From IMG/VR virus record IMGVR_UViG_3300034117_001582, positions 227,868 through 291,867 of that record: DNA of 64,000 nt, one strand, 5' to 3'. Both the position numbers and the translations under genes were made by a program. The notes under the pieces were generated by a model that saw only the letters and a list, made by a program, of their open reading frames with translations, had not been told where the DNA came from and did no database searches. This document shows, in pieces, positions 5,879-27,600 of this stretch (position 1 is the stretch's first letter; the number at the start of each line of letters is the position of its first letter).

Positions 5879-5898
5879 ATAATGATAAATATATGGGG

Positions 5899-5930: not shown

Positions 5931-5934
5931 TATC

Positions 5935-8110: not shown

Positions 8111-8236
8111 AGAGTATAGGATAAATTTATGAGGTGAATTCCGTAGTGATAACGGAGGACTATGAACCGAATGAATTAATCGTATAGTCTAACTTACTTT
8201 CCCTATAATGTAGAGGATTAGTTATTTTATACATTA

Positions 8237-9358: not shown

Positions 9359-9375
9359 ATTAATAAATATATCAT

Positions 9376-9412
9376 AAATAAAAATCCCCCCATCTTTACA
9401 AGTGGAGGATTA
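9376..9412 (-). terminator. Intrinsic terminator
   Basis: aatcc..ggatt imperfect hairpin + T-tract; related sequence at 14705-14730. Confidence 0.6.
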
Positions 9413-9418
9413 GTCATT

Positions 9419-10120
9419 TTATGGTACTTGTTGTAACCCTAACTCAAAGTAGTCATACTCGTTGTTGTAAAATCTTGGATTGTTTACAAATATATTATAC
9501 ATTGGAAGTAAAATGTTATGTAACTCTTCTTTCCATTCGTCGTAGTCAGTTTCTGTCATATCACTTATAAAATATTTAGGTTTTACTTTTTCTAATGTTC
9601 GTTCTAAATTGTCTTGAAGATTAGTTTTTCTTAGGTTTGTTATATTTCCATAAACATATACTTCTACTTCAGGGTCATTTGTTGTGACATGCGTGGTTTC
9701 ATAATCAAAGTCAAACTCATAACGATAAAACACCCCCGAAAAATCAATATGTTTAATTTGTTTTCCACTAACATTAAGATGTGTTCTATCTTCTTTTGAT
9801 ACATAACAATTGTTTCTGATATTTTTCATCCATGAAGCAAAATGCTTATATTTGTTAAAATCAGTGTTTGTCATATCACAAAATGATTTAAACTCATCAT
9901 GTAAAACTTGAGTTAGTATTGTTTTTGAATATGAATAATCATTTGGGTTTTTAACTTTCCATTTTATTTGTAACCCTGTCCATTTTGGAACTAAAAAAAG
10001 TCCTTCGAATTCTATTGGGTTTTCATTTAAATAATTATAATAGTAATACTTTACAGGATTTTCTTTAGGGTTGGTTCTTTCTTCCCTTAATACTCTTCTT
10101 ATGTTCTCTTGTAGGTTCAT
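9419..10120 (-). CDS. Leader-B protein (MNLQENIRRVLREE), unknown cargo
   Basis: Start reassigned to 10120 (4-nt overlap with upstream stop). Confidence 0.85.
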   Translation of the reverse strand: MNLQENIRRVLREERTNPKENPVKYYYYNYLNENPIEFEGLFLVPKWTGLQIKWKVKNPNDYSYSKTILTQVLHDEFKSFCDMTNTDFNKYKHFASWMKNIRNNCYVSKEDRTHLNVSGKQIKHIDFSGVFYRYEFDFDYETTHVTTNDPEVEVYVYGNITNLRKTNLQDNLERTLEKVKPKYFISDMTETDYDEWKEELHNILLPMYNIFVNNPRFYNNEYDYFELGLQQVP

Positions 10121-10848
10121 TCTGATAAATCTATAAACCAAGCAGATATTGGCACGTTTAGTTGGTTGGCGATGGTTGATCGTTTGTGTCCACCAATTAA
10201 TGTATATTCATTTCCTTCTCTTCCGCCTGTTGGTAATTTCATTACAAATGGTGCTGGAAGTTCTCTATGTTTTTCATTTCTTATTTTTTCTATATTATCA
10301 ACATAACCTTTGTGACGTTGTTTAACTTCTCCATCATCGCCTGTCATTTGTTTAATTAAACCTGATGATGTGGTATCTTTAAACATTCCTGGAAACTCTT
10401 TTGAGAATCTACCCATATAAAATGTGTTATTTATCATATCATTATCCCATTCTTCCATTCTTCCTTTATTAAACAAATTAAACCCTTCCATTTGTGATTG
10501 TCCATCTTTTAATAAAACTTGTCTAAAATCCTCCCAATCATCCATTAAATCAGATATTTCTTTATCTAATAGAATGTCTTTAATTTCTTGTTCATCATCC
10601 ACTTCACTTCCTTTTGAATGTTCGGCAATCATTTTGAATGTATGAGGAAATATGGAATACATTAAATCATAATTTTGTGGGTGAAAGAATTCATCTTTAC
10701 TGAACCTCATATTATTTCCCAATAGTTCATCTAACTCTTGGTTAAAGTATTCTACTGTTGGTTCTAACCAAGTGATAGAATATGGATTTGATATCTCATT
10801 TAACCCCATCATTGATTTAATTCTTTGTATGTTTTCTTGTAGGTTCAT
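10117..10848 (-). CDS. Leader-B protein with C-terminal ParB/Sulfiredoxin-like domain
   Basis: PAPFVM...YTLIGGHKRSTIANQLNVPI resembles ParBc P.V...Y.IIDGHHR..A...LG. Confidence 0.7.
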   Translation of the reverse strand: MNLQENIQRIKSMMGLNEISNPYSITWLEPTVEYFNQELDELLGNNMRFSKDEFFHPQNYDLMYSIFPHTFKMIAEHSKGSEVDDEQEIKDILLDKEISDLMDDWEDFRQVLLKDGQSQMEGFNLFNKGRMEEWDNDMINNTFYMGRFSKEFPGMFKDTTSSGLIKQMTGDDGEVKQRHKGYVDNIEKIRNEKHRELPAPFVMKLPTGGREGNEYTLIGGHKRSTIANQLNVPISAWFIDLSE

Positions 10849-10861
10849 ATTAATGAATATA

Positions 10862-11071
10862 TTATTTTTTGATAATTCTTATTCTTTTTTTTTCAATCCA
10901 ATTTTTTAATTCTTGAGTTTCTGGTACTTCAGTTAAAACAAACTCCCTAATATAATCATCGGCTAAAAAATTTGGTAAATTAACGGGTTGAAATCCCATT
11001 TCGTTTTTTGTGATTAAGACCAAATGATTTTTTTTTCTTTTGTGTCTTTTGGTGGGTATTAGTTTTTTCAT
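10862..11071 (-). CDS. Small basic hypothetical protein
   Basis: 69-aa ORF in operon order. Confidence 0.6.
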   Translation of the reverse strand: MKKLIPTKRHKRKKNHLVLITKNEMGFQPVNLPNFLADDYIREFVLTEVPETQELKNWIEKKRIRIIKK

Positions 11072-11111
11072 TTATGTTTTATTATTCTTTTTATATAACC
11101 TTGTAGGTTCA

Positions 11112-11429
11112 TTACTTTGTCTTCTTAACACAATTAGGATATCGTTTACCAAACATTGTCTTCATACCTTTTTGAGTATATCCTGCCCAACATCTCTCTG
11201 TAAGTTCACCTTCTTTCATCTCACTTTGTTTACGTTTACCTTGACAGTGAGCTCTTTGACTAAATCCTTTTGGGTTATTGCAGTCGATTGATTTTTTATA
11301 CTTTTCTGACCACTTTTCTGTAACATCCCCTTCTCCCATCTCTTCGTCATTTTTTATTGTATTTTCATTGATTACTCTTTTAACTAACAAAATAAGGTCT
11401 GATTCCGTTAACCGTATTACTTTTTTCAT
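11112..11429 (-). CDS. Leader-A protein carrying two short basic Cys-pair modules
   Basis: VTE|KWSEKYKKSIDCNNPKGFSQRAHC and LTE|RCWAGYTQKGMKTMFGKRYPNCVKK, modules I recall from large T4-like phage proteins. Confidence 0.85.
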   Translation of the reverse strand: MKKVIRLTESDLILLVKRVINENTIKNDEEMGEGDVTEKWSEKYKKSIDCNNPKGFSQRAHCQGKRKQSEMKEGELTERCWAGYTQKGMKTMFGKRYPNCVKKTK

Positions 11430-11430
11430 A

Positions 11431-11838
11431 TTATCTATTGTATGGCCTAAACCTTGATGGGTTTGATTTTATTGCTGACTTTGGGAATTTTAATCCAACA
11501 CCCTGTTGTCTTGCGTTCTTTAATGTTCTTGCGTATTCGGTTAGTTCTTCATTTCCCATATCATCAATAGCCTTTACTAATTTATGGCATTTCTCTGATA
11601 CCTCACCCTTTTCGTGATCAGTTATTGATAATTTTACTTTGTTGTAATTTATTTTAATATCAGGATGATGATTTTGTGATTCGGCAATCTTCGCAACTTT
11701 ATTAACAAATTCCATTGATTCATTAAAATCTTTGAATTTAAAAGTTCTTTCTAATTTTTGCTCTGAATCACTCCAACCTTTGGATTCATTCATATTTATC
11801 ATTTCCTGTATTCTTCTTATGTTCTCTTGTAGGTTCAT
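11431..11838 (-). CDS. phhB: Leader-B + pterin-4-alpha-carbinolamine dehydratase (PCD/DCoH) + basic C-terminal peptide
   Basis: LERTFKFKDF..SMEFVNKVAKIAESQNHHPDIKINYNKVKLSITDH is the Pterin_4a signature. Confidence 0.85.
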   Translation of the reverse strand: MNLQENIRRIQEMINMNESKGWSDSEQKLERTFKFKDFNESMEFVNKVAKIAESQNHHPDIKINYNKVKLSITDHEKGEVSEKCHKLVKAIDDMGNEELTEYARTLKNARQQGVGLKFPKSAIKSNPSRFRPYNR

Positions 11839-11852
11839 ATTATATGAATATA

Positions 11853-12920
11853 TTATGCGTAGTTAACATCATTATTTGTATTTATTTTTGCAAATTGTAT
11901 TGAGTAGTCATATATTTCTTTTAAATTGATTTTTAGTAAAGAAAGATTTAAATCTATCATATAATCTCCTACTGATATGGCATCTGATGCCGTCATTTCA
12001 TATTTTTTTCTATAAAAATCATATTTGTTTACCATTTCAGGATCTTCAGTGTATTCATTAAATAACCACCAAACGTCAATAGCGTCTACATTGTTAATAT
12101 TAATCCTAACGTCTATCCATTTCAATCGTTTATCGGATTTTTTATTGTTTTTACCATATATTTTTATTAAATTACCATCATATTCCACTTTATCAATAAC
12201 TACCTTATCGTCTTGCCCTGAAAACTTAACGTTATCTTTTATTAATTTAATAAAATTATCTAATGTTCCAAAATCGGTTACATTTAAAAGTCTTTTAAGT
12301 GTTTTAATACGAGCCGAATGTTCGTTATTTGATTTACCATAATCCTTATCCCATTCTTTAGGATAACGTTCCCCATACCATTTTGAATCAATATTGGATG
12401 GTAAATAGTTAGATACACCAATATTTTTAAAATAAAAAGAAATACAATGGTCAAATTCATGGACTAAAATTAATATACCCTCATTTTTATTAACACCATT
12501 AGGAAATATATTTTTAGTACAAAAATTAAGATTAGAATATTTGTCTTCATTAACAAACCCACCTACTTTGGGTTGACAGATTGGATCATCCGAATTAAAA
12601 ACTAAATTTACATTATTTATAAAGTCTTTTAATTCTTTTTTTTGTTTATCACCCCAATCTCCATTTGTGAACTCAATAAGTTTTTTATTGAACCATTCAC
12701 TGTCTACGTATTTTAACATGTAAGTTCTTGCTTGAGTAAAAAATGGTTTAACAAAATTTTCAACCTCTGTTATTTTTTCTTGTTCGGTTTTAGATTTGTC
12801 TTCCCAATATTTTTTTAAAGTAATAGGGTCAACATGTTTTAATTTACAAGCATCATCCACTTCCTCTTTAATTACCCCCATCATTTCCTGTATTCTTCTT
12901 ATGTTCTCTTGTAGGTTCAT
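11853..12920 (-). CDS. Leader-B protein, putative zincin metalloprotease (HEFDH)
   Basis: Paralog of 8237..9358; both end AKI.T..DVNYA; TATTTAT 12925-12931. Confidence 0.85.
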   Translation of the reverse strand: MNLQENIRRIQEMMGVIKEEVDDACKLKHVDPITLKKYWEDKSKTEQEKITEVENFVKPFFTQARTYMLKYVDSEWFNKKLIEFTNGDWGDKQKKELKDFINNVNLVFNSDDPICQPKVGGFVNEDKYSNLNFCTKNIFPNGVNKNEGILILVHEFDHCISFYFKNIGVSNYLPSNIDSKWYGERYPKEWDKDYGKSNNEHSARIKTLKRLLNVTDFGTLDNFIKLIKDNVKFSGQDDKVVIDKVEYDGNLIKIYGKNNKKSDKRLKWIDVRININNVDAIDVWWLFNEYTEDPEMVNKYDFYRKKYEMTASDAISVGDYMIDLNLSLLKINLKEIYDYSIQFAKINTNNDVNYA

Positions 12921-12935
12921 AATGATAAATACTTT

Positions 12936-13649
12936 TTACATATGAATTATTTTCCACTTACCTTTAAAATCCTCCACAAGACATGTGGAGTTCTCACAGA
13001 AGTCCCCACTGTTCATATAGTCCACATCTAACTTAGGTTGATGGATGTGTCCACATACCGCGACATCACATCCTTTTTGTTTTGATAATCCTTTTGCGTT
13101 CTCCTCAAAATCAGATACAAAGTTGATTGCTCCCTTTACAGATTGTTTAATATCATTTGCCAAGGAATGGTATGGTAAGTTAAACTTTCTTCTAATATAG
13201 TTGTATATCGTATTTAATCTAATAACTAAATCGTATGACCATCCACCAAGAACTGCCAACCATCTTACTTTCATAATCACAAAGTCTAATACATCCCCAT
13301 GAAAACAATAATAACTTCTTCCGTCCGCTCCAATGTGTGTGTATTTTCTAACAATCTCTATGTTGTTTAATAAGAACGGAACAAATGGTTTTAAAAAGTC
13401 ATCGTGGTTTCCCCTGATATACACTACCTTTGTTCCATCTTCTGATCGTTTCATAAAACGTCTGAATATCTTTGAGCAATCTTTTTTCCATTTACCTCCA
13501 CCCTTTAATGCCCATCCATCAATAATATCACCATTTAATATTAGTGTTTCAGATTCATTCTCTTCCAAGAACTTAATTATCTTGTCTGTTTGTGATTGTC
13601 TGGCACCTAAGTGTAAATCACTCATTATAATTGTTCTCCACTTTTTCAT
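12936..13649 (-). CDS. LpxH/PlcP-like metallophosphoesterase (UDP-2,3-diacylglucosamine hydrolase family)
   Basis: SDLHLG, LNGDIIDGW, GNHD, HGD, RWLAVLG..SY, CGHIH, YMNSGDFCENSTCLVE. Confidence 0.88.
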   Translation of the reverse strand: MKKWRTIIMSDLHLGARQSQTDKIIKFLEENESETLILNGDIIDGWALKGGGKWKKDCSKIFRRFMKRSEDGTKVVYIRGNHDDFLKPFVPFLLNNIEIVRKYTHIGADGRSYYCFHGDVLDFVIMKVRWLAVLGGWSYDLVIRLNTIYNYIRRKFNLPYHSLANDIKQSVKGAINFVSDFEENAKGLSKQKGCDVAVCGHIHQPKLDVDYMNSGDFCENSTCLVEDFKGKWKIIHM

Positions 13650-13972
13650 ATAAATAAAGATATGTATTGTGCTAATTTATAACCTGTAAATGCCCCAATG
13701 GCGGCAGATCCAGGAAGAATAATAAATTTACCCAATTTTGTTTTATACTTTTCACGATTTACAATGTATGAGATTAATAAATAATATAATATAAAATTTA
13801 TAAATACCATAAAATCAAGCTCCTTTGACATAAAAACAACAATTGAGTTACCAATAAGTCCCCACATAAAATTTATAATGGTTTCTCTTATTAACTCAAA
13901 TGGTGTTGTAATGGCCCCAAATATATTAATTTGTTTGCTCATGGGATTTTGTTTATTTTTTTTCATTTCCAA
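13646..13972 (-). CDS. Small multi-pass membrane protein
   Basis: Three hydrophobic segments; overlaps both neighbours. Confidence 0.7.
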   Translation of the reverse strand: MEMKKNKQNPMSKQINIFGAITTPFELIRETIINFMWGLIGNSIVVFMSKELDFMVFINFILYYLLISYIVNREKYKTKLGKFIILPGSAAIGAFTGYKLAQYISLFI

Positions 13973-14685
13973 TAGTCTTTGTCGTTTGTAAAATATTCTT
14001 TATTTTTATTATTGAAGAATGATGACAACATTAGTCTTAACATATACATCACACCTTTGTTTTCAAATCTTCTTGGTGGTGTATATACAATATTGTTTAT
14101 TCTTCCGAATTTCTTTGGTTTAATTTGTTTTGAGAACATATAATCTTCTGCGACTTTAATCTCTTCATCAAAACCTCCAATTGATTTAAACGTCTCTGAA
14201 CGAACTAACATGTATCCACCTAAACAGAATGGTGTTGACCACTTGGAAAGTGCTTGTATTAAGTCAAACACCTTATATACGTAGTTATATCTTCCATTGT
14301 CTGAACGGAACTTTGTTGTTACTAAATCTAAATGGTATCTATGTATTCTTACTACCGATCGTTTTAGTACCTTTGGATCTAATAGGAACACATCAGCATC
14401 CATAAACAACACATATGGTGTTGTAACAAGTTTGAATCCGTTGTTTCTTGCTATTGCTGGAAGTCCACCATCCATTAAATGTAAATCAAACATATCTGAA
14501 TTATGTTCATATTCTATTCTACCCAACAGGGCAAATTTTGTTACACCATCGTTTGATGCGTCACATACAACAACTTTTACGTTATGTATATCAACCTGAT
14601 AGTTTAACAGGTCCAACGTTTTTAATATAATATCCTTCTCGTTCTTACAAGGTATTACGATCGTTACTAATTTACTTAAATCCAT
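13963..14685 (-). CDS. Glycosyltransferase family 2
   Basis: TIVIPCKNE, VVVCDAS.DG, ARNNG, VLFMDAD (DxD), GGFDEEIKVAED. Confidence 0.92.
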   Translation of the reverse strand: MDLSKLVTIVIPCKNEKDIILKTLDLLNYQVDIHNVKVVVCDASNDGVTKFALLGRIEYEHNSDMFDLHLMDGGLPAIARNNGFKLVTTPYVLFMDADVFLLDPKVLKRSVVRIHRYHLDLVTTKFRSDNGRYNYVYKVFDLIQALSKWSTPFCLGGYMLVRSETFKSIGGFDEEIKVAEDYMFSKQIKPKKFGRINNIVYTPPRRFENKGVMYMLRLMLSSFFNNKNKEYFTNDKDYWK

Positions 14686-14763
14686 ATTCGTTTAATATAA
14701 TAATAATCCACCATATTTACAAGTGGAGAATAAAATTTATATTCAGCAATATCCAAATTTAAT

Positions 14764-15273
14764 TTATTTTTGACACCCAGGACTTTTGGGGTTCATTTTT
14801 TTACAATGGGTTCCTGTATAATAATCCCAACCTTTTTCAGAGTGACCAATTGATGTTTTTTCAAAAATATTTGGTTCAAAAAAAGTATTTAATTTATTAA
14901 TAATTTCATTATATACTTTTATAACTTCGCCATCCCATTTTTTATTTTTTTCAGCATCAAATTTTACACTTTCCATACTTGATTTAAAATAACCAACTAA
15001 ACCAACTAATTTAGGAACGTCATCAATAGTTTCACCTTCTTTTAAATTTTCATATTTTTCTTTATCGTAGTATTTACCATCAACTTTAACATAAAAATTT
15101 AACATACGTTCCACATTGTCTTTTAACTCTAAAATTGCGCTTATATGTGTTTTTTCATTATTATCACTTTTTAAGTTTAATTTATTTTTTATATATTCTA
15201 AACTGTTAGTGTTTTCCTCAGATAAGGTTATCATCATTGATTTAATCCTTTGTATGTTTTCTTGTAGGTTCAT
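14764..15273 (-). CDS. Leader-B protein, unknown cargo
   Basis: MNLQENIQRIKSMMITLSEE; first 45 nt incl. flank near-identical to gene 10117..10848. Confidence 0.85.
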   Translation of the reverse strand: MNLQENIQRIKSMMITLSEENTNSLEYIKNKLNLKSDNNEKTHISAILELKDNVERMLNFYVKVDGKYYDKEKYENLKEGETIDDVPKLVGLVGYFKSSMESVKFDAEKNKKWDGEVIKVYNEIINKLNTFFEPNIFEKTSIGHSEKGWDYYTGTHCKKMNPKSPGCQK

Positions 15274-15322
15274 ATTATATAATTATCTTTGTGTTCATTA
15301 ATGTTATATTTCATATCACTTA

Positions 15323-16393
15323 TTAATCCCAATCACCATTTTTTATTGTTTCCATCATCCAAGAAATGATTGATAATAACTCTTCATTAGTTAGGTTGTT
15401 AATAGTTGTTATGTATTGGTCGTTTTGTTCAGTATGTCCGTATTCATCAATATCAAATTCCATTATCTCAACAGCAATTTGGTCGCTGTCTTGAACCATT
15501 ATATCGTCAACATATTTGTTATTACTTAATTGTATTTCATATCCACTAAGTATTCCACTATTATCTCCCCATTTATTACCATTTATTAAAACAAAATCCC
15601 TAATATATTGTTTTAATACTTCTTTAGGGTTATTCATGTTTTTTAACGCCGAACTAATTTGACGAATGTCTAACCCTGACATGTTTATAAAATCATATAA
15701 ACCATACTCATCTATAAGTTCCGTTAAAGATTGTTTTTTATTTTCTGATTCATTCATGGGTTTCCATTTGCAATTTGGTTTTGATATGGATCCAACATAT
15801 AAATTATCTATTGGCAAATAACCTTTAATAGCGTTTTTAACATCATTTCTTAAATTTTCTCCATGTCGCGCTCTTCCAACAAAACTAAAAAATAAATCAT
15901 TTAGTTCTTCCGACCCAAACACCAAATAAATCACATACATATCGTCTTCGAATGTTACTCTAATATCGCAAACACAATCTTCTTTTTTGAATGGTTCTAT
16001 AAGTTCTTTAATTATGTTAAGATACTTTGGTTGTTTTTCTTCGGATTCATTTATAACGTTTCCTTCACTATCGTATTTTAGTTTAATGGCATCCAAACGA
16101 AAATCTGCACTGTTATCTTGGTCATTGTGCCAATATGGAATAAGTTTAATACCTGTATATTCATAGATTTTACGTTGTATTTGTTCTGCAAAATAAGTCT
16201 CTTCATTACCAGCATATTCATCGTTATCAAAATAAACTCTTATCATTGGTTTATTTTCATATTTTTTAATATCAATAAAACTAACCTCATCAAAAAACTC
16301 ATGAATCATTCTTGTCACCAACTTAAGTTTTTTCTCTTCAGATTTGTCAACTGATTCCCTTAATATTTTTTTTATGGATTCTTGTAGGGTCAT
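15323..16393 (-). CDS. Leader-B three-module polyprotein-like protein
   Basis: ILRE|S, VINE|S, PMNE|S partition three modules. Confidence 0.85.
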   Translation of the reverse strand: MTLQESIKKILRESVDKSEEKKLKLVTRMIHEFFDEVSFIDIKKYENKPMIRVYFDNDEYAGNEETYFAEQIQRKIYEYTGIKLIPYWHNDQDNSADFRLDAIKLKYDSEGNVINESEEKQPKYLNIIKELIEPFKKEDCVCDIRVTFEDDMYVIYLVFGSEELNDLFFSFVGRARHGENLRNDVKNAIKGYLPIDNLYVGSISKPNCKWKPMNESENKKQSLTELIDEYGLYDFINMSGLDIRQISSALKNMNNPKEVLKQYIRDFVLINGNKWGDNSGILSGYEIQLSNNKYVDDIMVQDSDQIAVEIMEFDIDEYGHTEQNDQYITTINNLTNEELLSIISWMMETIKNGDWD

Positions 16394-16845
16394 ATAAAAA
16401 TTATATTAGTGGCTTTACAACCAAACTTTTCATTTATTAACTCTAATAACTCAATTTTCCAATTACCTTTACGTCCCAAGTAGTTCTCAATTTCTTCAGC
16501 AAACTGTTCGTAAAATATTATAAAATTAAAATTTGGATTTTTAACATCAGGCATTTCATAACATACTTCAGGTAACTCACCCATTACTTCTTTAAAGTAT
16601 TTACCATTATCGTCATAGTTATTACCATCAACCAATTTGAATAAATAATCATCATAATTATTTTTTGGAAGAACAAACCCAACAGCATATGGGTCACAAC
16701 AAACACCCATTCCACAATTATATTGAGCCCAATCATAATAGATATCATCAAATCCATCAAACAACATATTAAGTAAATTGCTTAAAACGGGTTTAATATT
16801 GGTTTCTTCCCTTAATATTTTTCTTATGGATTCTTGTTGGTTCAT
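16390..16845 (-). CDS. Leader-B protein (MNQQESIRKILREE)
   Basis: ORF track; Cys-rich cargo. Confidence 0.85.
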   Translation of the reverse strand: MNQQESIRKILREETNIKPVLSNLLNMLFDGFDDIYYDWAQYNCGMGVCCDPYAVGFVLPKNNYDDYLFKLVDGNNYDDNGKYFKEVMGELPEVCYEMPDVKNPNFNFIIFYEQFAEEIENYLGRKGNWKIELLELINEKFGCKATNIIFI

Positions 16846-18441
16846 CTATATATTATTTTTAACCATATTATAAAAGAACTCACTGATTTTATCAGGAGTT
16901 GTTATGTTCTGTTGTTTTAATTGTGACCGATAAAACCCTACCATCGCAATTATTTGTGACATAGGCGCGTTTTTATATAATGATGGAGGAATAAACCCTT
17001 TATCTAATAATCCTTGTTTTTGGAGTTGTTTAATCTTTTTTCCCGCAAACTCATCCGCAACTTCTTCAGTATGTTTCATTAGGTTTGCTGCCTCCTCAAC
17101 ACTTATATCACCAAGATAACACTCATACATTAAATCTTCACCATATTTTTTAAATTGGTACTGATGTGCAGTCTCGTGAAATATAATAAACAATAGATAT
17201 TCTAACCTTTGGTTTAACGCCATTTTATTTATTAACACACCATCATGTAAAGCAACTCCCATAGCCGGCATCTTGAAATTGGCAAATTCTATTTTTTTGC
17301 AGTTTGATTGTGAAATAAAATCTTTTACCTTTTCTATTAACTCATCAGACATTTCATGTCTTGATGTAATATCATCTATTAAGGTGTTAACACCATCAGT
17401 TTCTTCCTTTAATACTTTTCTTATGGATTCTTTTAGGTATATGTTTTTCTTTCCACAATCGTTAACTGTTTTGTAATACGTATCAACCGCCTCGTTTGTG
17501 TAATTATAAATTACCTGCCAAATCTCATCCAATATGTTATCATACATTTGTTTAATCCCTTGAGTTTGTGGAAAAAGTTTTGTTCCATGTCCACCAATAA
17601 ATGTTACGGTAACACTTACAAATTTAAATGTATTATTACCCAAAGTATTTCTTTCATTAGGTACCTTAACTTCAAACCCACATATTACGTGGTCATATTC
17701 AGGTAGTATTATATTATTTAATACATTCTCAATCATTTCTTTTTGTGACTCTTCTTTGGATTCTCTTATCATATCTCTGCCAGTACCTTCACGCATTAAT
17801 TCTATTGCTTCTGATGGTATGTTATCAAACGTAACTATATGTTTCTTAGATGATTCAAAATGTCTATCTTTATACCACTTAACATTAGGTATTAATTCTG
17901 TATTGATTGTCCATACATCGTCGTCATATGTAGAATCAAACCACGCTCGTTTATTTGTCGAGTTGGTTGCAAATATTGCAGGTATACATTTTTCACCATA
18001 TCCTGCGTATATTTTATAACATTCACCAGCAATTGCCTTTAACCCTTCATTTGATATTCTATCTCTAAACTTTGGATTGGATTTATGTATAACAATTTTG
18101 TTTGGTGTAATTTCTTTTCCTGCTGGGCTATAATTTTCATTAAGTTCTTCCTCATATCTTTCAGTATCTAAATAAAAATCAGGTTCCTTTTTTAATTCTG
18201 TTCGTTTCTTGTAGTCATACCAAGGAACAACATTTAAACCGGTAAACTTATTTATAGTATCACATATTTCTGAACTCTCTAACTCTTCCCATGCATCATA
18301 GTAAACCATAATCTCATTTCTTTTGGCGATGTATTCTAAATCTATAATATTATCAAACATGGTATATATAAAATTCTTAACTAACTCAAATTTATTAGTC
18401 TCCTCTTTTAATACTTTTTTTATGTTCTTTTTTATGTTCAT
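16846..18441 (-). CDS. Four-module polyprotein-like protein: unknown + ART/Tpt1-like + unknown + IrrE/ImmA-like HExxH peptidase
   Basis: VLKE|, ELNE|, MIRE|, embedded YLKESIRKVLKEE; HETAH...EEVADEFA. Confidence 0.8.
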   Translation of the reverse strand: MNIKKNIKKVLKEETNKFELVKNFIYTMFDNIIDLEYIAKRNEIMVYYDAWEELESSEICDTINKFTGLNVVPWYDYKKRTELKKEPDFYLDTERYEEELNENYSPAGKEITPNKIVIHKSNPKFRDRISNEGLKAIAGECYKIYAGYGEKCIPAIFATNSTNKRAWFDSTYDDDVWTINTELIPNVKWYKDRHFESSKKHIVTFDNIPSEAIELMREGTGRDMIRESKEESQKEMIENVLNNIILPEYDHVICGFEVKVPNERNTLGNNTFKFVSVTVTFIGGHGTKLFPQTQGIKQMYDNILDEIWQVIYNYTNEAVDTYYKTVNDCGKKNIYLKESIRKVLKEETDGVNTLIDDITSRHEMSDELIEKVKDFISQSNCKKIEFANFKMPAMGVALHDGVLINKMALNQRLEYLLFIIFHETAHQYQFKKYGEDLMYECYLGDISVEEAANLMKHTEEVADEFAGKKIKQLQKQGLLDKGFIPPSLYKNAPMSQIIAMVGFYRSQLKQQNITTPDKISEFFYNMVKNNI

Positions 18442-18442
18442 G

Positions 18443-18766
18443 TTACATTACTTGGGATAAAAACTTTTTAATTGTTCTAACCACTTTTTGTCTATATGGA
18501 TTGTTTTCATTTGAAAAATTATCAATTGGTTCTGTAACGTTATTATCTTCTAACATATTCAATATCAATCTTACTTGTCTTTTTTTATTATCAAAAGTTC
18601 CAATATTATAATAATCGTCATCTACTTTGAAATAAACTTTTTTAAATCTAATCTGGTCATCAATATTTATTTCTTCAACTTTATATCTTCGCATAAGAAA
18701 ATTCATAACTTTTTTGTCAATGTCCTCAGTTTCTTCTTTCAATATGTGTCTAATTAGTTTTCTCAT
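18443..18766 (-). CDS. Leader-C protein (MRKLIRHILKEE)
   Basis: ORF track. Confidence 0.85.
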   Translation of the reverse strand: MRKLIRHILKEETEDIDKKVMNFLMRRYKVEEINIDDQIRFKKVYFKVDDDYYNIGTFDNKKRQVRLILNMLEDNNVTEPIDNFSNENNPYRQKVVRTIKKFLSQVM

Positions 18767-19209
18767 TAAATAAAAATATAATCATCAACTTTTAATCCTT
18801 TATATCCTGTCACAGATCCATACGTATAACTCTCTTCTAATTTTAATTCGTCAGGTATATATTCATACATCTCAAACACATATTCACCTAATTTTTGAGA
18901 CTCTATATAGGGGTCAAATTTACCTTCATAATCAAATGGAGTAAGGACATATGCTATTTGTTTGTTTTTAATATATTCAAGGTTATACATCCGTTTTTTT
19001 TCCAAACCATAAAATTCTTTTACCTTTTCATATTCAACAACTAAATCAATATAAATACTTGTCCTATATTCCTCATAGTCGTTATGTAATTGCCAACCAA
19101 CAACAAATGGAAACTCGTTCTTTAATCCGTTAACAACAATATCAATACCCTTATCTATTTGTTGTTTAGATACCTCTTCATTTAATATGTGTTTAATAAG
19201 TCCTCTCAT
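18766..19209 (-). CDS. Leader-C protein (MRGLIKHILNEE)
   Basis: ORF track. Confidence 0.85.
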   Translation of the reverse strand: MRGLIKHILNEEVSKQQIDKGIDIVVNGLKNEFPFVVGWQLHNDYEEYRTSIYIDLVVEYEKVKEFYGLEKKRMYNLEYIKNKQIAYVLTPFDYEGKFDPYIESQKLGEYVFEMYEYIPDELKLEESYTYGSVTGYKGLKVDDYIFI

Positions 19210-19211
19210 TA

Positions 19212-20273
19212 TTATGCTTTTAACGTTTCTACTATATCCTGAATGTCAGACAAATCATAACTACGACTTATGTTGTTTGGTCGTTGTGCAGTCTTTCCGT
19301 TTATTTCCCCCAACTGAACATAGGTTTGAGGCATCCTATGTTCATTACTATCCAATTTAACAACTTTTACTGAAGACTCATCATTAAAAGAATCATATAA
19401 AAAATCTTTAAATTTATGATTCTCATCTTCCGTTAATTTATTTTCATTATAAATAATATTAACTATTGGCCAACTATTAGACATCCACCTATTCCATCCG
19501 GCATCGATAGTTTTAAATGGTAAAACAATTGATGGTTCGTCCCCATCCGTTGTCCAAGATACCTCAACCAAACCTTTTTGGTTTTCAATTCTTTCAACCA
19601 TTTCGGGGTCGTCTTTGAATATTTTTTTTAAATTGTCTAATCCTCCAACCAATTTTGCAGCATAAAATAATCCATCCGTTTTTATTAGATTAATAATGTC
19701 CGAATTATTACTTTCATTTAAACTTTCAGATTCGCCATAAAGTTTGTCGTGTATTCTCTCTACATCTTCTATTGAAAAAGAGTCATCATAATCATGTATA
19801 TCGACATCATTACCGTTTATTTGTGTAACATCAAAATAAGTGGACTTCCCAAAATCAAATGATTTAGTTTTTAACTTTCCTACAGTGTTGTCATTTTGAA
19901 TTACCGAAATAATGGTTATCAGTTTGTTTTTTTCCACCGAAGTTAATTTACTGTCATCATAAATAAGATTTAATTCAGGCCAAGAATGTGTGCCCCATAT
20001 ATTTTTTCCAATACCTATTATTTCATATTTAATTGGAAATACAACAAATTTATCACTTTTAAATTTCCCATCGTAATACATTTCAAAATCAACAACACCT
20101 GTTAATTCATCTAATATTTCAGAAACTTCGAGGTCATCTTTGAATATACTTTTAAGATTATCCAGTCCACCAACCATTTCAGCAGCATCAAAGATATTAT
20201 TATCTTCGATAAATTGTTTCAGCTCTTGTTGGAGTCTATTTTCTTTTAATATGTGTTTAATAAGTTCTCTCAT
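19212..20273 (-). CDS. Leader-C protein with two homologous modules
   Basis: AAEMVGGLDNLKSIFKDD / AAKLVGGLDNLKKIFKDD; HSWPELNLIYD / NSWPIVNIIYN; linker SLNE|S. Confidence 0.88.
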   Translation of the reverse strand: MRELIKHILKENRLQQELKQFIEDNNIFDAAEMVGGLDNLKSIFKDDLEVSEILDELTGVVDFEMYYDGKFKSDKFVVFPIKYEIIGIGKNIWGTHSWPELNLIYDDSKLTSVEKNKLITIISVIQNDNTVGKLKTKSFDFGKSTYFDVTQINGNDVDIHDYDDSFSIEDVERIHDKLYGESESLNESNNSDIINLIKTDGLFYAAKLVGGLDNLKKIFKDDPEMVERIENQKGLVEVSWTTDGDEPSIVLPFKTIDAGWNRWMSNSWPIVNIIYNENKLTEDENHKFKDFLYDSFNDESSVKVVKLDSNEHRMPQTYVQLGEINGKTAQRPNNISRSYDLSDIQDIVETLKA

Positions 20274-20275
20274 TA

Positions 20276-20932
20276 CTATCTACTTCCTCTTACTCTATCT
20301 ATTTCGACCTCACGAAGTTTATCTACATATAATTTATCAATATAACCAGGAGTTTCTTTTTCTTTTTTAATTAAATCGTTTGCTTTCCATAAAGTATTTT
20401 TGACAATAAAATCAATCATTTCATCATTTGTAACTCCTTCAGGTTTTGAAACAGGAGGAACGCAAATTTGAGTTTTTTCTGGATGTACAGAAAATTCATC
20501 TATTGTTATATCATTTCTTCCCATTTTATTTTGGATTGTTTCTAAAAATGTGTCTTCAAACCAGTCTTGAATAACATATTTTAAATAGTTTTTTCTTACG
20601 GGAATGTCTGAATTTAATTCATCAAATATATCTTTAGGCATTTGTAATTCACCACTTTCAAAATCTCTTTCTTCCGTTTTTCTTTTATCATCAAAAACAT
20701 TTTCATCATCATGGAAGAATAATATAACACTCATTATTTCTTTTCCGTCGTTACACCATTCAAAATCATGTCTTGTTTCCCAAGATTTGTCATGATACAT
20801 TTGTGCGCCATCAACATAGTCGTTTAACCACCTATAGATAAGTTTATCCACACTTGGTGTTGGCTTTGAGTATTTCTTATTAACCTCTTCTTTTAATATA
20901 TGTCTAATTAAATTTCTATTCTCCATCATCAT
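20276..20932 (-). CDS. Leader-C protein (..RNLIRHILKEE)
   Basis: Start among the MMM codons at 20932-20926. Confidence 0.8.
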   Translation of the reverse strand: MMMENRNLIRHILKEEVNKKYSKPTPSVDKLIYRWLNDYVDGAQMYHDKSWETRHDFEWCNDGKEIMSVILFFHDDENVFDDKRKTEERDFESGELQMPKDIFDELNSDIPVRKNYLKYVIQDWFEDTFLETIQNKMGRNDITIDEFSVHPEKTQICVPPVSKPEGVTNDEMIDFIVKNTLWKANDLIKKEKETPGYIDKLYVDKLREVEIDRVRGSR

Positions 20933-21347
20933 ATTCTTCTTGTACAAATTGGTATTTCATATTCATTGAATAGTCACCTCCCGCACTCCATTCACAACCA
21001 ATAAACCAAAACATCAAGTTATTATGTTTACCTTTCTTTTCCCCAAAAGACCCATTACTTGTAAATGAATAATTAAGTAAAATTTTATTCAATTCTTTAT
21101 CGACTGTTTTTAGTTGGTCGGTAAACGAAAAAAGGTCAGGGTCTTCACACCAAGATGTTATTAATAATTCACCCTCAATTTCGTTACTTCTGCTAATATA
21201 ATTAATATTCGCAGTTTCTATATTTGTTATTAAACTTGAATCTACATTACTTTGTAATATCCACGCAATTTTTTGAGCAGATCTAATAAACTTTTCTTTA
21301 AGATCTGAAGTATCTTCTTTTAATACTTTTCTAATTATTTCTTTCAT
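20916..21347 (-). CDS. Leader-C protein (MKEIIRKVLKED)
   Basis: ORF track. Confidence 0.85.
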   Translation of the reverse strand: MKEIIRKVLKEDTSDLKEKFIRSAQKIAWILQSNVDSSLITNIETANINYISRSNEIEGELLITSWCEDPDLFSFTDQLKTVDKELNKILLNYSFTSNGSFGEKKGKHNNLMFWFIGCEWSAGGDYSMNMKYQFVQEEYDDGE

Positions 21348-21988
21348 TTTACTGGCTTACCGTATTTGTAGAATTTCTGTTGTATGTTTATTGTGCCCTT
21401 ACATCCACCTGTCTTCTTAGTCCCATTATCATTAAAACATTTAGGTATGGTTTTATTAAAATAATAAACCATTTTAGGCTCCCCTGAATTGCCTGAGTGC
21501 ATGGATTGTAATTGTCCATTAACCGCAGACTCACCTCCACCAGCACTTCCTCTACTATCGAATTGCTCGTAAGTATATCCATCAGTACTAGGACCAATAG
21601 TAACTTCCCAATTTACCGTTAAAGTATTTGGGTCAATAAACACATACATGTCTTTAATATCAACGGCCTTAACATTTTTATTTTTAAATTTATAATCTTT
21701 AATACCATTTTGTACTATCGTATTAATTCTACCACCAAACCCATCGGACCGTCTTCTGTGAAATGAATGTAATGCGTCGTAAACTCCTGATTTACCAGCA
21801 GCACTATAACTTCCTTTTATTACTTCATCTGATGAAAATCCTTTTGATGGGTCTAACCATAGTGAACCTTTAAGGTCTTTAGTCGGGTCAGGTTTAATAT
21901 TAGCCCCTTTTTTCTTTTCGTTATCCTCTAATATATTAGGATTTAAACCAACATATTCTTTTAATACTTTTCTAATTAAATCTTTCAT
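21344..21988 (-). CDS. Leader-C protein (MKDLIRKVLKEY), Gly-rich cargo
   Basis: First gene of a long operon; TATTTAT 21993-21999. Confidence 0.85.
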   Translation of the reverse strand: MKDLIRKVLKEYVGLNPNILEDNEKKKGANIKPDPTKDLKGSLWLDPSKGFSSDEVIKGSYSAAGKSGVYDALHSFHRRRSDGFGGRINTIVQNGIKDYKFKNKNVKAVDIKDMYVFIDPNTLTVNWEVTIGPSTDGYTYEQFDSRGSAGGGESAVNGQLQSMHSGNSGEPKMVYYFNKTIPKCFNDNGTKKTGGCKGTINIQQKFYKYGKPVK

Positions 21989-22046
21989 AGTTATAAATAT
22001 CGCTTAATTATTTTGCGTCATCAATAGTTTATCGTATCTTTATGTT

Positions 22047-22319
22047 ATGAAAAAATTCTTAGCATATTACTTTATCTATCGAACCACTAAGGACCCTATG
22101 ACAGCGGCCAAAATATATCAAATGATATATCATCCAGAGAAAACAACAAATATGCAAATATTTGAATACGTAAAACCATCTGTGGTTGAAACACCAAGAG
22201 TCTCTGATAAAAAACAAGAGATAATTGCGTCATTAAACTACCTTAAAAATAAATCAATTAAGTCTAAACAAGATAAAGAATCTATCTATAGTTTGGAGAT
22301 GGTATTAAAGAATATGTGA
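22047..22319 (+). CDS. Hypothetical protein
   Basis: 90-aa ORF filling the gap between minus genes. Confidence 0.7.
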   Translation: MKKFLAYYFIYRTTKDPMTAAKIYQMIYHPEKTTNMQIFEYVKPSVVETPRVSDKKQEIIASLNYLKNKSIKSKQDKESIYSLEMVLKNM

Positions 22320-22325
22320 CGAGTA

Positions 22326-23093
22326 TTATAATTTCATATCTTTAATAAACTTATTGTGCGAATCCTTATACGATTTTTTACTTTCGTCATTCATATTTTT
22401 AGTGTATTGCCAATTCCAATAAAGTTTATCATTAGGTTTAAACCCATAATATTCATGACTTTCTTTTTGTGTTTCAGTAACGTTTTCACCATTCCAGTTT
22501 TGACCAACACAAATAAACCCCGATTCAATATCTTTGATTAAATTAGATTCACCTAGCGTTGAGTGTCGGTTTTGAATCCATGTAAGTCTTTCCATTAAGT
22601 TTTGGTAATACATATTTGCCTGTCCCCATCTTATTGATGAAAAGAATAACACAGCGTCCGATTCAAATAATTCTCTACTAACTTTCCATAGTTCGTCTGA
22701 TGGTTCATTAATGTTTACCCAACATCTGTGGTTACCTGTAGGGTTCTTTTTCTTATCTTTAAGTGTTGCCTTTAGTAATCCACAAGAGTTTCCATCTTTT
22801 CTTGATACATTACCTTCACAAGGTAATATTTTGAGTTCAGTAATATCTATGAACGTTGCTTTGTCACCTAACTCTTCTTGTATGTGTAAAGCCAATAACC
22901 TTGATTTTGGAATATCTATATTCTTTGGGTCAAACTGATACCTATTTGAACAAGACAATAAAAGAACTTTGTCTTTCTTTTTTAAAATATCGATGGTTTG
23001 TTTTAGTTTTTTATATCCGTCACTTTGAACCATCTCTTCAGACAACATTAATTGTCTAAGTCTATTTAATTCTTCTTGTAAAATAGTTTTCAT
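22326..23093 (-). CDS. Leader-B-like + multimeric flavodoxin (WrbA)/NADPH-dependent FMN reductase-like protein
   Basis: VLLLSCSNR, ITELKILPCEG, four Cys, ESDAVLFFSSIRWG...MERL; start reassigned to 23093; TATTTAT 23098-23104. Confidence 0.8.
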   Translation of the reverse strand: MKTILQEELNRLRQLMLSEEMVQSDGYKKLKQTIDILKKKDKVLLLSCSNRYQFDPKNIDIPKSRLLALHIQEELGDKATFIDITELKILPCEGNVSRKDGNSCGLLKATLKDKKKNPTGNHRCWVNINEPSDELWKVSRELFESDAVLFFSSIRWGQANMYYQNLMERLTWIQNRHSTLGESNLIKDIESGFICVGQNWNGENVTETQKESHEYYGFKPNDKLYWNWQYTKNMNDESKKSYKDSHNKFIKDMKL

Positions 23094-23175
23094 AATAATA
23101 AATATCACCTATTTTATTTATGAGGTAAAGAGCGTTTTGATATCATTACAATATGAGAAAATTATAATATAAAAT

Positions 23176-23205
23176 AAAAAAAGGGAGACTTTCTCCCCCC
23201 CTTTG
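23176..23205 (-). terminator. Intrinsic terminator
   Basis: gggaga cttt ctccc hairpin with T-tract on minus strand. Confidence 0.7.
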
Positions 23206-23207
23206 TC

Positions 23208-23936
23208 TTAGAACATTTTCAGAAGTAAGTCCCCGTTTCCTTCCCACATTTTGATTTGTCGTTTAGGAACCCAAAACTCCATTTCACCAATTTCTTCAAC
23301 TCTTTTGAGGTATTCGTTACGGAAACGCTCAGTTTCTGAACTGTTAGTGATGTATTCAACACCCATGTGACCAGCACAAGTCTTACCCATTTTAGTCAAC
23401 ATAGAGAACTCATCAGTCAAAGTTCTACCACAACATACACAAACATCACCACGTTTGATTGTCATTTTACCTACCAATTTTACAGCTTTAGGTGAAATGG
23501 CCAACACTTTAGTGAGGTCCAAAAGTGTTGGGTTGAATTTAAGTCCATAAGTTTCTTTCATCTTTTGACCAATGCTACGTCCTACGATAATAGTGTCACC
23601 GTCCAAAACAAGATTCATTTTACGAGTCGCATTTTTAGTCTCCTCTTTTTGGATTTGACCCAATGCTGCCGATACTTGTTTATCAGACAATTTACCAAAC
23701 TTCTCAAGTTTAGATTTGATATCGTTAACGAAGTCGTTTGGACCATCGTATGATTGAATTTTTTTCATGCCGTCAGACAATTCAACTTGTTTTGCTTCGA
23801 CAACAACTGATAAGATTTTTTCTACAGCGGCTACTTGTTTTGGTGTTAGTGTGCCGTATTTTTTGATTACATCATTCATCTTAATAACGAAAGTGTTAGA
23901 TCCTTGGTAGTTTTGTACTTGAGTGATAGTGGACAT
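23208..23936 (-). CDS. Hypothetical protein with DUF6011-like Zn ribbon
   Basis: CVCCGRTLTDEFSMLTKMGKTCA; short internal repeat (LTPKQVAAV / LSDKQVSAA). Confidence 0.7.
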   Translation of the reverse strand: MSTITQVQNYQGSNTFVIKMNDVIKKYGTLTPKQVAAVEKILSVVVEAKQVELSDGMKKIQSYDGPNDFVNDIKSKLEKFGKLSDKQVSAALGQIQKEETKNATRKMNLVLDGDTIIVGRSIGQKMKETYGLKFNPTLLDLTKVLAISPKAVKLVGKMTIKRGDVCVCCGRTLTDEFSMLTKMGKTCAGHMGVEYITNSSETERFRNEYLKRVEEIGEMEFWVPKRQIKMWEGNGDLLLKMF

Positions 23937-23962
23937 AGATATGTGTTTTATTGATTACCTTA

Positions 23963-23992
23963 CAAAGATAGTAATAAAACGGTAATTGCAAA
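23963..23992 (-). promoter_or_regulatory. Bacteroidota sigma70-type (early) promoter
   Basis: TTTG-N18-TATCTTTG. Confidence 0.75.
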
Positions 23993-24027
23993 AAAAATCC
24001 CCACTTTTTTGTGAGGATTTTAATTTT

Positions 24028-24780
24028 TTATAACATTTCCTCAGCCAATGTCCAAAGTTTTGTATTCACTTGGTTCACAGCCATAATGTTTTCAAGACCT
24101 CGTAGTTTAGTTCTACGTCCACGTTGTGATGTTGTTTCAATACCACCTCTAATGTATTTCTCTTGTACCACATTGAAGGTTGTCCACAAGTCGTCACCTT
24201 GATCCTCATCTCTGTTTGGTGTTAATAACCCAACAATCTGTAACTCATTTAACACTTTGTCTTGTCCGAATCGGATTCCAACTGACTTACGAACAAATTC
24301 AATCTTCTCGTCAATTGTCATCTCACGTTCCATCATTCTTTTAACCGAACCCTCAATTTTAGGTAGTTTTCCAGCAAATGACTCTGTAAGTCGTTTTACC
24401 TCATCTAAATCAAAACGTGAGTGTCGTATATTGAATGATTCTGCAAGTGCTGTTGGTACTGTTAGTCCGTTTGAGCAGACCAATCTGTGTAATCCTGCAC
24501 TTACTCGGAAGGACGCCATTCCGTTATGTGAATTACGTATGATAGCTTCAACCAATGTGTCTCCAACTTTTGGTAGTTCGCCATTACGTAATCGTAGTTC
24601 GTGTACTGAGTGAATACCTTTACCCACTTGTTTTGCTGATGCTAATTCCCATCCTTCACGTTCGAAGTTTTCAAGGATATCCATAGTTGGGACAAATACG
24701 TATTTGTCTGACATCTTTGTAGATGGTGACGTTGCAAATACAGAAGGTGTTTGTGATTTTAATTGGTCAAGTGTTATCAT
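24028..24780 (-). CDS. DUF932-family phage/plasmid protein
   Basis: PSVFA....MSDKYVFVPT, RNSHNG.ASFRVSAGLHRLVCSNGL, DLWTTFNVVQE. Confidence 0.85.
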   Translation of the reverse strand: MITLDQLKSQTPSVFATSPSTKMSDKYVFVPTMDILENFEREGWELASAKQVGKGIHSVHELRLRNGELPKVGDTLVEAIIRNSHNGMASFRVSAGLHRLVCSNGLTVPTALAESFNIRHSRFDLDEVKRLTESFAGKLPKIEGSVKRMMEREMTIDEKIEFVRKSVGIRFGQDKVLNELQIVGLLTPNRDEDQGDDLWTTFNVVQEKYIRGGIETTSQRGRRTKLRGLENIMAVNQVNTKLWTLAEEML

Positions 24781-24806
24781 ATGTCGTTTAGTTTTTAATT
24801 AGAATA

Positions 24807-24838
24807 CAAAGATATGTAATTGGTTACAAACTTCCAAA
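24807..24838 (-). promoter_or_regulatory. Bacteroidota sigma70-type (early) promoter
   Basis: TTTG-N20-TATCTTTG; -7 elements also upstream of minus genes at 31268, 34555, 38813, 39063, 43713, 45199, 47552, 50968. Confidence 0.8.
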
Positions 24839-24854
24839 CATTTTTAAATAAACT

Positions 24855-26213
24855 TTAACCATAAAAGTAAGTTTTTAACGTCTTTCTAACGTTTTCGTTA
24901 ACTTTTATTATTAATTCTTGATTTTTACTTTTTTTAAACTTTAAATCATTACCATCCCATATTGTATTTACCATTTTACCATTTACCAACGCATTTACCT
25001 TATCAAACTTATCTAACGTTAAACGAACGCTTGTTATTTTTTTATTAAATTTTGATTTTAAATATAAAATAAAGACATTAACGGTTCCTGTTTTAACGTC
25101 ATATTTAATCTTATGTTCTTTTTCTTTATCAATTTCAAAACTAGGCACGGTACCATCTAAAAGTGATTGGAAAATGTCATCCTCATTTGATAATAAGTCA
25201 TTTGGGTTAGTCATCGAAACATTATTAATTTTACTAAATAAATTTCCCCATGTAGTTCCGTTTAATATGCCGTCCTTGATTGTTAATGCCTCACCACTAC
25301 CAATACTAACCTTATACCCATTAAGTGTTTTTTTAAGTGATAAATAATAACCTGACCCATCAGGTATTTTTTTTGTTTTGCCATCATTTTCTAATGGTTC
25401 TCCATAAAAAATATATTCACCATCACCTAAAACACCCAAAGAAACGTTTTCATCTAACACAAAATTACTATATGAATCAACAACCCCTGTTGGTGTTGTA
25501 TTATTATTATTTAGTGTTGGTTTTGGTATTACCTCATCATTTGGCGTATCACTTTGCCCAAACTTTAAATCTTTACCATCCCATATTACGGTAACATCTT
25601 CCTGATTTATGGTGGCAGTTATACCATCGGACGAATTTAATTCTAACCGAACATATGGTATTTTTTTATCACATTTTGATTTTAATATTAACGTAACAAT
25701 AATAACGGTTCCGGTTTTAGGGTCAAACACAATGTTATTTGACACATCTTCTTTATCAATTTCAAAACAAGAAACGGTATTATTTAAAAGTGATTGGATG
25801 ATGTTATTTGCATCCGATGATAAACCATTTGGAGTATTAAATGAAACTTTATTAAATTTATAAAATAAATCTTTCCATGTGTTATCAATTAATTTACCAT
25901 CTTCGATTGTTAAATATGCATTATGGTCAATATTAACGTTAACCCCATTAATTGTTTTTTCAAGGGTTAAATAATATTTTGACCCGTCAGGTATATTTTT
26001 AGTTGTGTTATAATCTTTAAAAACACTTTCGACATTAAAAAAGTCATAAACACCACCATCTAAAATACCCAAAGAACTATTTTTATCTAATGTTATATAC
26101 TTACCACTTGAATTAGCAACCCCCGTTGGTGTTGTAGGATCAACATCTTCATTCAATATTCGTCTAACAATTCTTTTTAAATCGGATTCAGTAAGTCTTA
26201 TTACTTTTTTCAT
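24855..26213 (-). CDS. Leader-A protein with tandem duplicated ~190-aa domain
   Basis: TTPTGV...IPDGS.YYL...SLL..TV..FEIDKE...KTGTV...IWDG.DLKF twice. Confidence 0.9.
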   Translation of the reverse strand: MKKVIRLTESDLKRIVRRILNEDVDPTTPTGVANSSGKYITLDKNSSLGILDGGVYDFFNVESVFKDYNTTKNIPDGSKYYLTLEKTINGVNVNIDHNAYLTIEDGKLIDNTWKDLFYKFNKVSFNTPNGLSSDANNIIQSLLNNTVSCFEIDKEDVSNNIVFDPKTGTVIIVTLILKSKCDKKIPYVRLELNSSDGITATINQEDVTVIWDGKDLKFGQSDTPNDEVIPKPTLNNNNTTPTGVVDSYSNFVLDENVSLGVLGDGEYIFYGEPLENDGKTKKIPDGSGYYLSLKKTLNGYKVSIGSGEALTIKDGILNGTTWGNLFSKINNVSMTNPNDLLSNEDDIFQSLLDGTVPSFEIDKEKEHKIKYDVKTGTVNVFILYLKSKFNKKITSVRLTLDKFDKVNALVNGKMVNTIWDGNDLKFKKSKNQELIIKVNENVRKTLKTYFYG

Positions 26214-26252
26214 ATTAAATAAATATGTCTTAAGACATAAAACAATACTTTA

Positions 26253-27268: not shown

Positions 27269-27276
27269 CATAATTA

Positions 27277-27534: not shown

Positions 27535-27600
27535 AGTGAATAAAATATAATTTACAAATTTATAAATGTCAAATAATTTACGACTTTTTGAACTTATCTT

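Follow-up and report, generated by a model that had tools for sequence, protein, structure and literature searches.

Putative capsid-targeted cargo polyproteins in an uncultured T4-like jumbo phage of Bacteroidota

The last 64 kb (227,868-291,867) of the IMG/VR contig IMGVR_UViG_3300034117_001582 (whole contig 291,867 bp, ~30% G+C), a stretch of 64,000 nucleotides that we call the window, come from an uncultured T4-like jumbo phage of Bacteroidota with a 292-kb genome, and encode a field of proteins with short N-terminal leaders, some of which are chains of several small domains. We propose, with a probability of about 0.72, that these chains are T4-style capsid-targeted cargoes fused into polyproteins and released by the prohead protease. 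A leader of the T4 kind would target a small cargo domain to the prohead, where a gp21-type serine protease (Peptidase_S77) would cut after the leader Glu and free the cargo in the capsid, from where it would be ejected along with the DNA. The polyprotein genes would be in-frame fusions of several cargo domains whose junctions keep a minimal protease motif, with the consensus L/I-N-E↓S (arrows mark proposed cuts), and each module of the chain would be set free by this protease too. Since the junctions retain this minimal site, a single leader would bring in the whole chain. A preliminary description of this DNA had already suggested that leader-cargo genes fuse in frame and that the protease removing the leader also releases the modules. 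This is now supported by the shuffling of the modules between relatives, by a junction motif that equals the leader ends, and by a gp21-type protease and a capsid protein with the site L-I-N-E↓A, both encoded in the same genome.

Module shuffling and the junction motif

The modules are evolutionary units, and their fusion, fission and reordering are frequent between strains and relatives. As the preliminary description had anticipated, relatives have them as separate leader-cargo genes and also arranged differently. Viral contigs were scanned with the 531-residue protein of the 16846 gene (we name genes by their lower window coordinate, and m1-m4 are the modules of this gene; Table 1), and 58 loci were found, with matches to residues 89-249, 229-531 or 336-531 separately. 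In relatives the copies of a given module share their first residue, which comes right after a leader or, within a chain, after phi-x-E (phi being L, I, M or V): YSPAGKE, for example, is preceded by LNEN in the window, by HILREET in L010 and by RILREED in L019. The most widespread module, m4, occurs behind all four leader types described below. In L003, where the shared m4 is 94% identical, ten modules stand in one 1057-residue open reading frame (ORF), which includes all three 15323 modules together with three from 16846 and one from 19212, in an order that differs from that of the window, and m4 is a stand-alone gene beginning MNLQENIRRILKEE↓TDG. L008 has a 1018-residue ORF of the same kind.

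The other genes of the cluster behave similarly. The cargo of 16390..16845 is found in L003 and L004 (96% identity) behind another domain, joined to it by an internal KESIRRILREE leader, and in other relatives behind a type C leader. The 18443..18766 cargo is internal in L007 (residues 183-277, behind KIIKEE↓), orthologues of 18766..19209 stand behind type D leaders in L003-L010, and module 2 of 19212 has a gene of its own, with a leader, in L005 and L010 and serves as the first module of the L003 1057-residue ORF. Relatives of 28873..29985 match residues 1-191 only or 199-370 only; module 1 of this type is followed by a stop in L246, and module 2 sits directly behind MKIIITESQMKMVVE↓N in L268. 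Two independent assemblies break within the 16846 gene (the end of L002 and the start of contig Ga0335048_0000009, at about window 17.83 kb). Together with the different module order in the strain with the 94%-identical m4, these breaks make the locus look like a strain-level rearrangement hot spot.

When the L003 ORF was compared by phmmer with 1.84 billion cluster representatives, 545 matches were obtained at E <= 1e-3, 126 of them at E <= 1e-30, and the best 150 of the 545 were used for the module-order and junction counts. More than 60 different arrangements of nine modules are found there. Every architecture listed ends with module I (15323 module 3), the first position is nearly always taken by module A (19212 type), and certain modules may be specialised for the ends of a chain.

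Module junctions read [L/I/M]-x-E-[S/N], most usually L/I-N-E-S. In the same set of matches 166/188 internal module starts lie at phi-x-E, compared to 26% of random control positions, and the residues at these 166 junctions are L87/I55/M19/V5, followed by N107/R26, then E, and then S126/N13/E11/D9. A smaller set of relatives gave phi-x-E within three residues in 18/24 internal starts, against 9.8% of random positions. Internal module ends carry the motif in 193/237 cases, whereas 37/44 protein-terminal copies lack it, many stopping at phi-N. The stop is TAA at the Glu position in three of the four loci that were read as DNA, and module ends of the form phi-N-TAA are found in L007 (2264-2291), L010 (8032-8059) and L005 (11890-11917) at the place that reads phi-N-GAA-TCN in internal copies. 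Cargo genes could be fused or split by a single G/T change in the junction codon for Glu. Within the window, phi-N-E-[S/N] occurs beyond residue 30 seven times in 37 leader genes (1.4 +/- 1.1 in shuffles) and not once in the 60 other genes. An N-glycosylation sequon (N-x-S) was rejected as the main explanation of the motif, since N is found in 107/166 junctions, whereas phi and E are constant.

Predicted structures place most of these sites in segments of low confidence, largely in line with the preliminary expectation of disordered linkers at the E sites. The AlphaFold2 model of 15323, made from a collinear 28-row alignment, has a mean predicted local distance difference test score (pLDDT) of 76.8 and a predicted template-modelling score (pTM) of 0.43, and drops below pLDDT 50 only at residues 14-16, 117-121 and 210-219, which are the three proposed sites. 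In the 16846 model the low-confidence segments are 1-14, 83-106, 224-230 and 317-337. Three of the four sites are in or beside them, and VLKE346↓E lies in a predicted helix.

Could these be ordinary multidomain proteins, with linkers that are never cut, a leader that acts as a docking or oligomerisation helix, and phi-N-E-S as a favoured linker or a leftover of fusion? Domain shuffling and disordered linkers would be equally expected in such proteins, and cleavage is so far argued from analogy. However, the motif is constant at more than 160 junctions between unrelated modules, where it matches both the leader ends and the T4-aligned site of the capsid protein (see below), while it is missing from most protein-terminal copies and absent from the non-leader genes of the window. 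A neutral fusion scar would be expected to decay and not to converge on L/I-N-E-S. We regard uncut chains as unlikely.

Leaders, protease and head genes

Leader genes account for about 37-40 of the 97 minus-strand window ORFs kept after filtering, and further ones lie beyond the window start. The leaders are short (10-24 residues), amphipathic and N-terminal, with a small cargo domain behind them, and come in four types: A, IRLTExDLxRIVxRVIxE; B, MNLQENIRRI...; C, MKIIITESQ...xLxE; and D, MxxLIRHILKEE. All four terminate in [L/I/V/M]-x-E. Similarity among leader proteins is limited to the first 22-37 residues, the remainder being otherwise unrelated. In relatives whose cargo has diverged to 40-60% identity the leaders are still retained at the protein level, and leaders are swapped between cargoes. 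Identical leader residues use the same codon in 158/215 cases, compared to 116/215 predicted by codon usage, so that part of the leader conservation reflects recent duplication. A purely DNA-level repeat was rejected, since the codons are only moderately more alike than expected and the leaders persist as protein in distant relatives. No signal-peptide-like hydrophobic core is found in the leaders; the true secreted proteins of the window have instead classic signal peptides and C-terminal domains of the type 9 secretion system (T9SS).

The leaders could, in principle, be addresses for another destination (a secretion route, the membrane or some other phage compartment) or signals at the DNA or RNA level, involved in recombination or translation. 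Such roles would suit the unusually large number of leader genes and, for a nucleic-acid signal, the excess of shared codons. They fit poorly with leaders that are kept as protein next to diverged cargo and swapped between cargoes, that all terminate in the protease motif whatever their type, that lack a hydrophobic core and that, in distant relatives, belong to genes inside the head gene module. We consider these roles very improbable.

The head genes were reached by a stepwise walk from the window start along contig Ga0335048_0000009 (= NCBI JBFDAV010000869.1), which is 100.000% identical to window 1-11820 and, at about 67-77 kb past the window start, carries genes for Terminase_6N, Portal_T4, Peptidase_S77 and Gp23. 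A related protease, in L100, shares 32% identity with T4 gp21 (E 1e-21), and the catalytic residues H85 and S140 align. The homologue in L037 matches Pfam Peptidase_S77 with E 1.6e-22, and this protease recurs, 92% identical, on the contig that carries the 635-residue polyprotein of L009. It is known that gp21 of T4 cuts after Glu in L/I-X-E, that a capsid-targeting sequence (CTS) of 10 N-terminal residues suffices to target foreign proteins to the T4 prohead core, after which it is removed, and that IPIII fusions are packaged in T4 (PMC9026906). T4 gp23 loses 65 N-terminal residues on maturation (PMC9958956), and the HLINE↓A of the capsid protein studied here aligns with FLTE65↓A66 of gp23, both columns being invariant. 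Sites of the form phi-x-E-[S/N/A/E/Q] number nine in the core-like 242-residue protein, 15 in the scaffold-like 516-residue protein and zero in the portal.

In distant relatives a leader-m4 gene lies inside the T4-type head module, between the protease and scaffold genes, in the order terminase, portal, Peptidase_S77, leader genes, acidic scaffold-like protein and Gp23 (E 2e-74). The head module at L279, with the Peptidase_S77 gene at 16116-16826, contains a ribosomal protein S21 gene (15343-15537, minus strand), between the core-like and protease genes. The portal of one distant relative (L037, 3751-6729) has 992 residues, compared to 601-603 elsewhere, and its insert matches an HNH endonuclease and looks intein-like.

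The least probable alternative is that the chains are cut by another enzyme, either the HExxH module m4 in cis or in trans, in the manner of viral polyproteins that process themselves, or a host protease in the cytoplasm. In favour of m4 are its 58 loci, an H-E-x-x-H that is invariant, a profile that weakly matches proabylysin and, in distant relatives, a gene next to that of the head protease. Most polyproteins do not contain m4, however; the gp21 family, of which the genome encodes a member, is documented to cut L/I-x-E sites after the Glu (PMC9026906), and the capsid protein has a site of this kind where T4 has its own.

All these alternatives appear less likely than polyproteins released by the prohead protease. 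Several points nevertheless weigh against that reading. Targeting, cleavage and packaging are inferred by analogy with T4 (PMC9026906), and the phage is uncultured and without a relative among cultured phages. The protease is encoded on a second contig, from another sample and not from the window's own record, and its specificity is deduced from one aligned capsid-protein site. Phi-x-E is also present inside modules, so that the motif alone does not define a cut, and VLKE346↓E sits in a helix that AlphaFold2 predicts to continue into m4. Homology of the leaders to the T4 CTS is not demonstrated, the two being comparable in length and terminal motif only. Finally, ~40 leader genes in 46 kb far exceed the few internal proteins known from T4, and not all of them need be capsid cargo.

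Genes of the window and their putative cargoes

The polyprotein genes and their neighbours are listed in Table 1. All the E sites listed previously for 15323, 16846, 19212, 28873 and 45227 (VSE↓S) are present. The complete leader embedded in 16846 does share a string with the start of gene 16390..16845, as noticed earlier: 17 nt are exact, at 16819-16835 and 17416-17432, and this string has exactly two occurrences in the window, with 0 expected by chance. The embedded leader was probably left behind, as a scar, by a recent in-frame fusion. The proposed relationship between the first modules of 15323 and 16846 holds with the leaders removed (paralogues with 27% identity, E 2e-5), and the duplicated module of 19212 is equally clear, its halves being 35% identical (E 3e-22). 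Module 3 of 15323 had also been likened to the 19212 module, but here profile comparison aligns 21 N-terminal columns only, with a probability of 22%. We reject this homology; the two share a short motif at most.

Table 1. Leader and putative polyprotein genes of the window. Residue numbers refer to the encoded protein; arrows mark proposed cuts.
Feature	Window coordinates	Strand	Residues	Remarks
Leader-gene field	85..46471	-		about 37-40 genes, four N-terminal leader types
Three-module polyprotein gene (15323)	15323..16393	-	356 in total	leader 1-13 (16355-16393)
15323 module 1	16046-16354	-	14-116	after ILRE13↓S
15323 module 2	15749-16045	-	117-215	after VINE116↓S
15323 module 3	15326-15748	-	216-356	after PMNE215↓S
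Single-cargo leader gene	16390..16845	-	151 in total	leader 1-13 (16807-16845), cargo 14-151
Four-module polyprotein gene (16846)	16846..18441	-	531 in total	leader 1-13 (18403-18441)
16846 m1	18136-18402	-	14-102	after VLKE13↓E
16846 m2	17761-18135	-	103-227	after ELNE102↓N; possible ART/Tpt1-like fold
16846 m3	17428-17760	-	228-338	after MIRE227↓S
16846 m4	16849-17403	-	347-531	after YLKE338↓SIRKVLKE346↓E; HExxH, zinc-peptidase-like
Complete embedded leader YLKESIRKVLKEE	17401-17439	-	335-347	between m3 and m4
Single-cargo leader gene	18443..18766	-	107 in total	type D leader
Single-cargo leader gene	18766..19209	-	147 in total	type D leader
Two-module polyprotein gene (19212)	19212..20273	-	353 in total	leader 1-11 (20241-20273), ends ILKE11↓N
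19212 module 1	19713-20240	-	12-187	
19212 module 2	19215-19712	-	188-353	after SLNE187↓S; paralogue of module 1
Two-module gene (28873)	28873..29985	-		type C leader; junction GINE199↓N
28873 module 2	28876-29388	-	200-370	

What might the cargoes be? Pfam and PHROGs searches of the genes of the polyprotein cluster found no significant family. The best Foldseek matches of the 16846 model are to Tpt1/KptA (E 0.01, probability 1.0, TM-score 0.37-0.40, ~110 columns), which have the ADP-ribosyltransferase (ART) fold. We attribute them to m2, as a lead only. At the sequence level m2 has no match in Pfam or PDB, and an Atlas search with it gave only weak leads, to Arr and PARP. In m4 the residues H75, E76 and H79 of the HExxH motif are invariant in 31 sequences and the profile match to proabylysin (4jiu) has E 0.003, while the fold search gave no convincing match despite pLDDT >90. 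This module is a candidate zinc metallopeptidase of the minigluzincin type, which is again a lead only. A fold search with the 15323 model returned generic small alpha/beta repeats only. With a putative Tpt1/ART-fold module and an HExxH zinc-peptidase-like one, some cargoes look like enzymes that would be delivered into the host.

Nearly all the genes of the window are on the minus strand, and no tRNA was found in it. No cultured-phage relative was found among 50,697 phage records by blastn, tblastn or a leader-peptide query, bar one 150-bp match to the thymidylate-synthase gene of Flavobacterium phages (window gene 62573-63724, minus strand). A Bacteroidota host is indicated by phage-encoded proteins with T9SS C-terminal domains. 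A series of phage genes with classic signal peptides (window 48169-61683, minus strand; L064 17292-19751) encodes secreted or surface proteins, one with Por_Secre_tail (T9SS) and Cohesin, one with a C-type lectin domain and one with CHU_C. Among the remaining minus-strand genes, 29982-30905 has a type C leader followed by Phage_lysozyme and LysM domains and is a candidate virion-carried cell-wall hydrolase, 40259-41200 encodes a DnaJ-type CxxCxGxG repeat protein, 41893-43011 an RNA ligase with an OB domain and 24028-24780 a DUF932 protein. In L276 a gene for 2958 residues (10407-19283), without a Pfam match, adjoins large genes (871, 1031 and 641 residues) that possibly belong to the tail or baseplate.

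Comparison with known systems

We found no earlier description of tailed-phage cargo polyproteins in the literature. If the chains are cut as proposed, this would be the first natural case found of a tailed phage packaging its accessory proteins as polyproteins. What T4 does with a few internal proteins, targeting them to the capsid, would then apply to an arsenal that is large, modular and quick to evolve, and new cargo could be recruited or combined without an address tag on each piece. With the leader and L/I-N-E-S junctions as a search rule, the genomes of uncultured phages could also be screened for ejected effectors, which are candidates for anti-defence or host takeover. As a design template, the chains suggest a natural way of loading several proteins per capsid, where T4 engineers now build CTS fusions by hand. 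Whether the wider picture holds is, in our opinion, evenly balanced: there may be a widespread clade of uncultured T4-like Bacteroidota jumbo phages in which interchangeable leaders address dozens of effector domains to the capsid and these domains are routinely fused into, and released again from, polyproteins with minimal prohead-protease sites as junctions. A single targeting event would then deliver several effectors together in a fixed ratio, in a combination that is rewired from strain to strain, possibly via single GAA/TAA changes in the junction codon for Glu.

One of the closest parallels is with the T4 proteins IPI, IPII, IPIII and Alt, which likewise carry a short N-terminal leader (the CTS, cut by gp21) that ends in L/I-x-E and is common to unrelated cargoes. 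In the phage described here the protease is a gp21-family Peptidase_S77, the portal is of the Portal_T4 family and the Gp23 capsid protein has a propeptide site that aligns; a putative ART-fold cargo parallels T4 Alt. T4 also packages and processes foreign proteins that have been fused by engineering to IPIII or the CTS (PMC9026906). The differences lie in scale and in arrangement: there are four leader classes of 11-24 residues and dozens of leader genes here, compared to few in T4, and natural chains of up to ten modules with a minimal L/I-N-E-S junction and a reshuffled order, so far known from sequence alone. The T4 core proteins gp22, gp67 and gp68, which are gp21 substrates, also have several L/I-x-E sites per polypeptide, and in this respect the core-like 242-residue and scaffold-like 516-residue proteins of this phage resemble them. 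The T4 fragments, however, are remains of the scaffold and for the most part leave the head, whereas the modules described here are folded, conserved and independently mobile domains.

The giant phages phiKZ, 201phi2-1 and SPN3US also have many head-internal or ejected proteins and a diverged gp21-like protease, which cuts after Glu with a preference for Ser at P1' and cuts some substrates more than once (PMC10052503, PMC9026906). In these phages, though, the sites are A-x-E or S/A/G-x-E (PMC10052503), with a small residue at P3, and the propeptides are long and degraded, whereas P3 at the junctions here is L87/I55/M19/V5 of 166. Neither a common short leader nor shuffled cargo modules have been described for phages of the phiKZ type, and the head genes here are of the T4 type. 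Finally, the polyproteins of RNA viruses are similar in that a viral protease frees several units from one chain by cutting at a motif that is short and conserved. In those viruses the units comprise the replication and structural proteins of the whole genome and are processed in the cytoplasm, in contrast to the accessory cargo modules of this double-stranded DNA phage, which are presumably processed in the prohead and of which each is viable as a separate gene.

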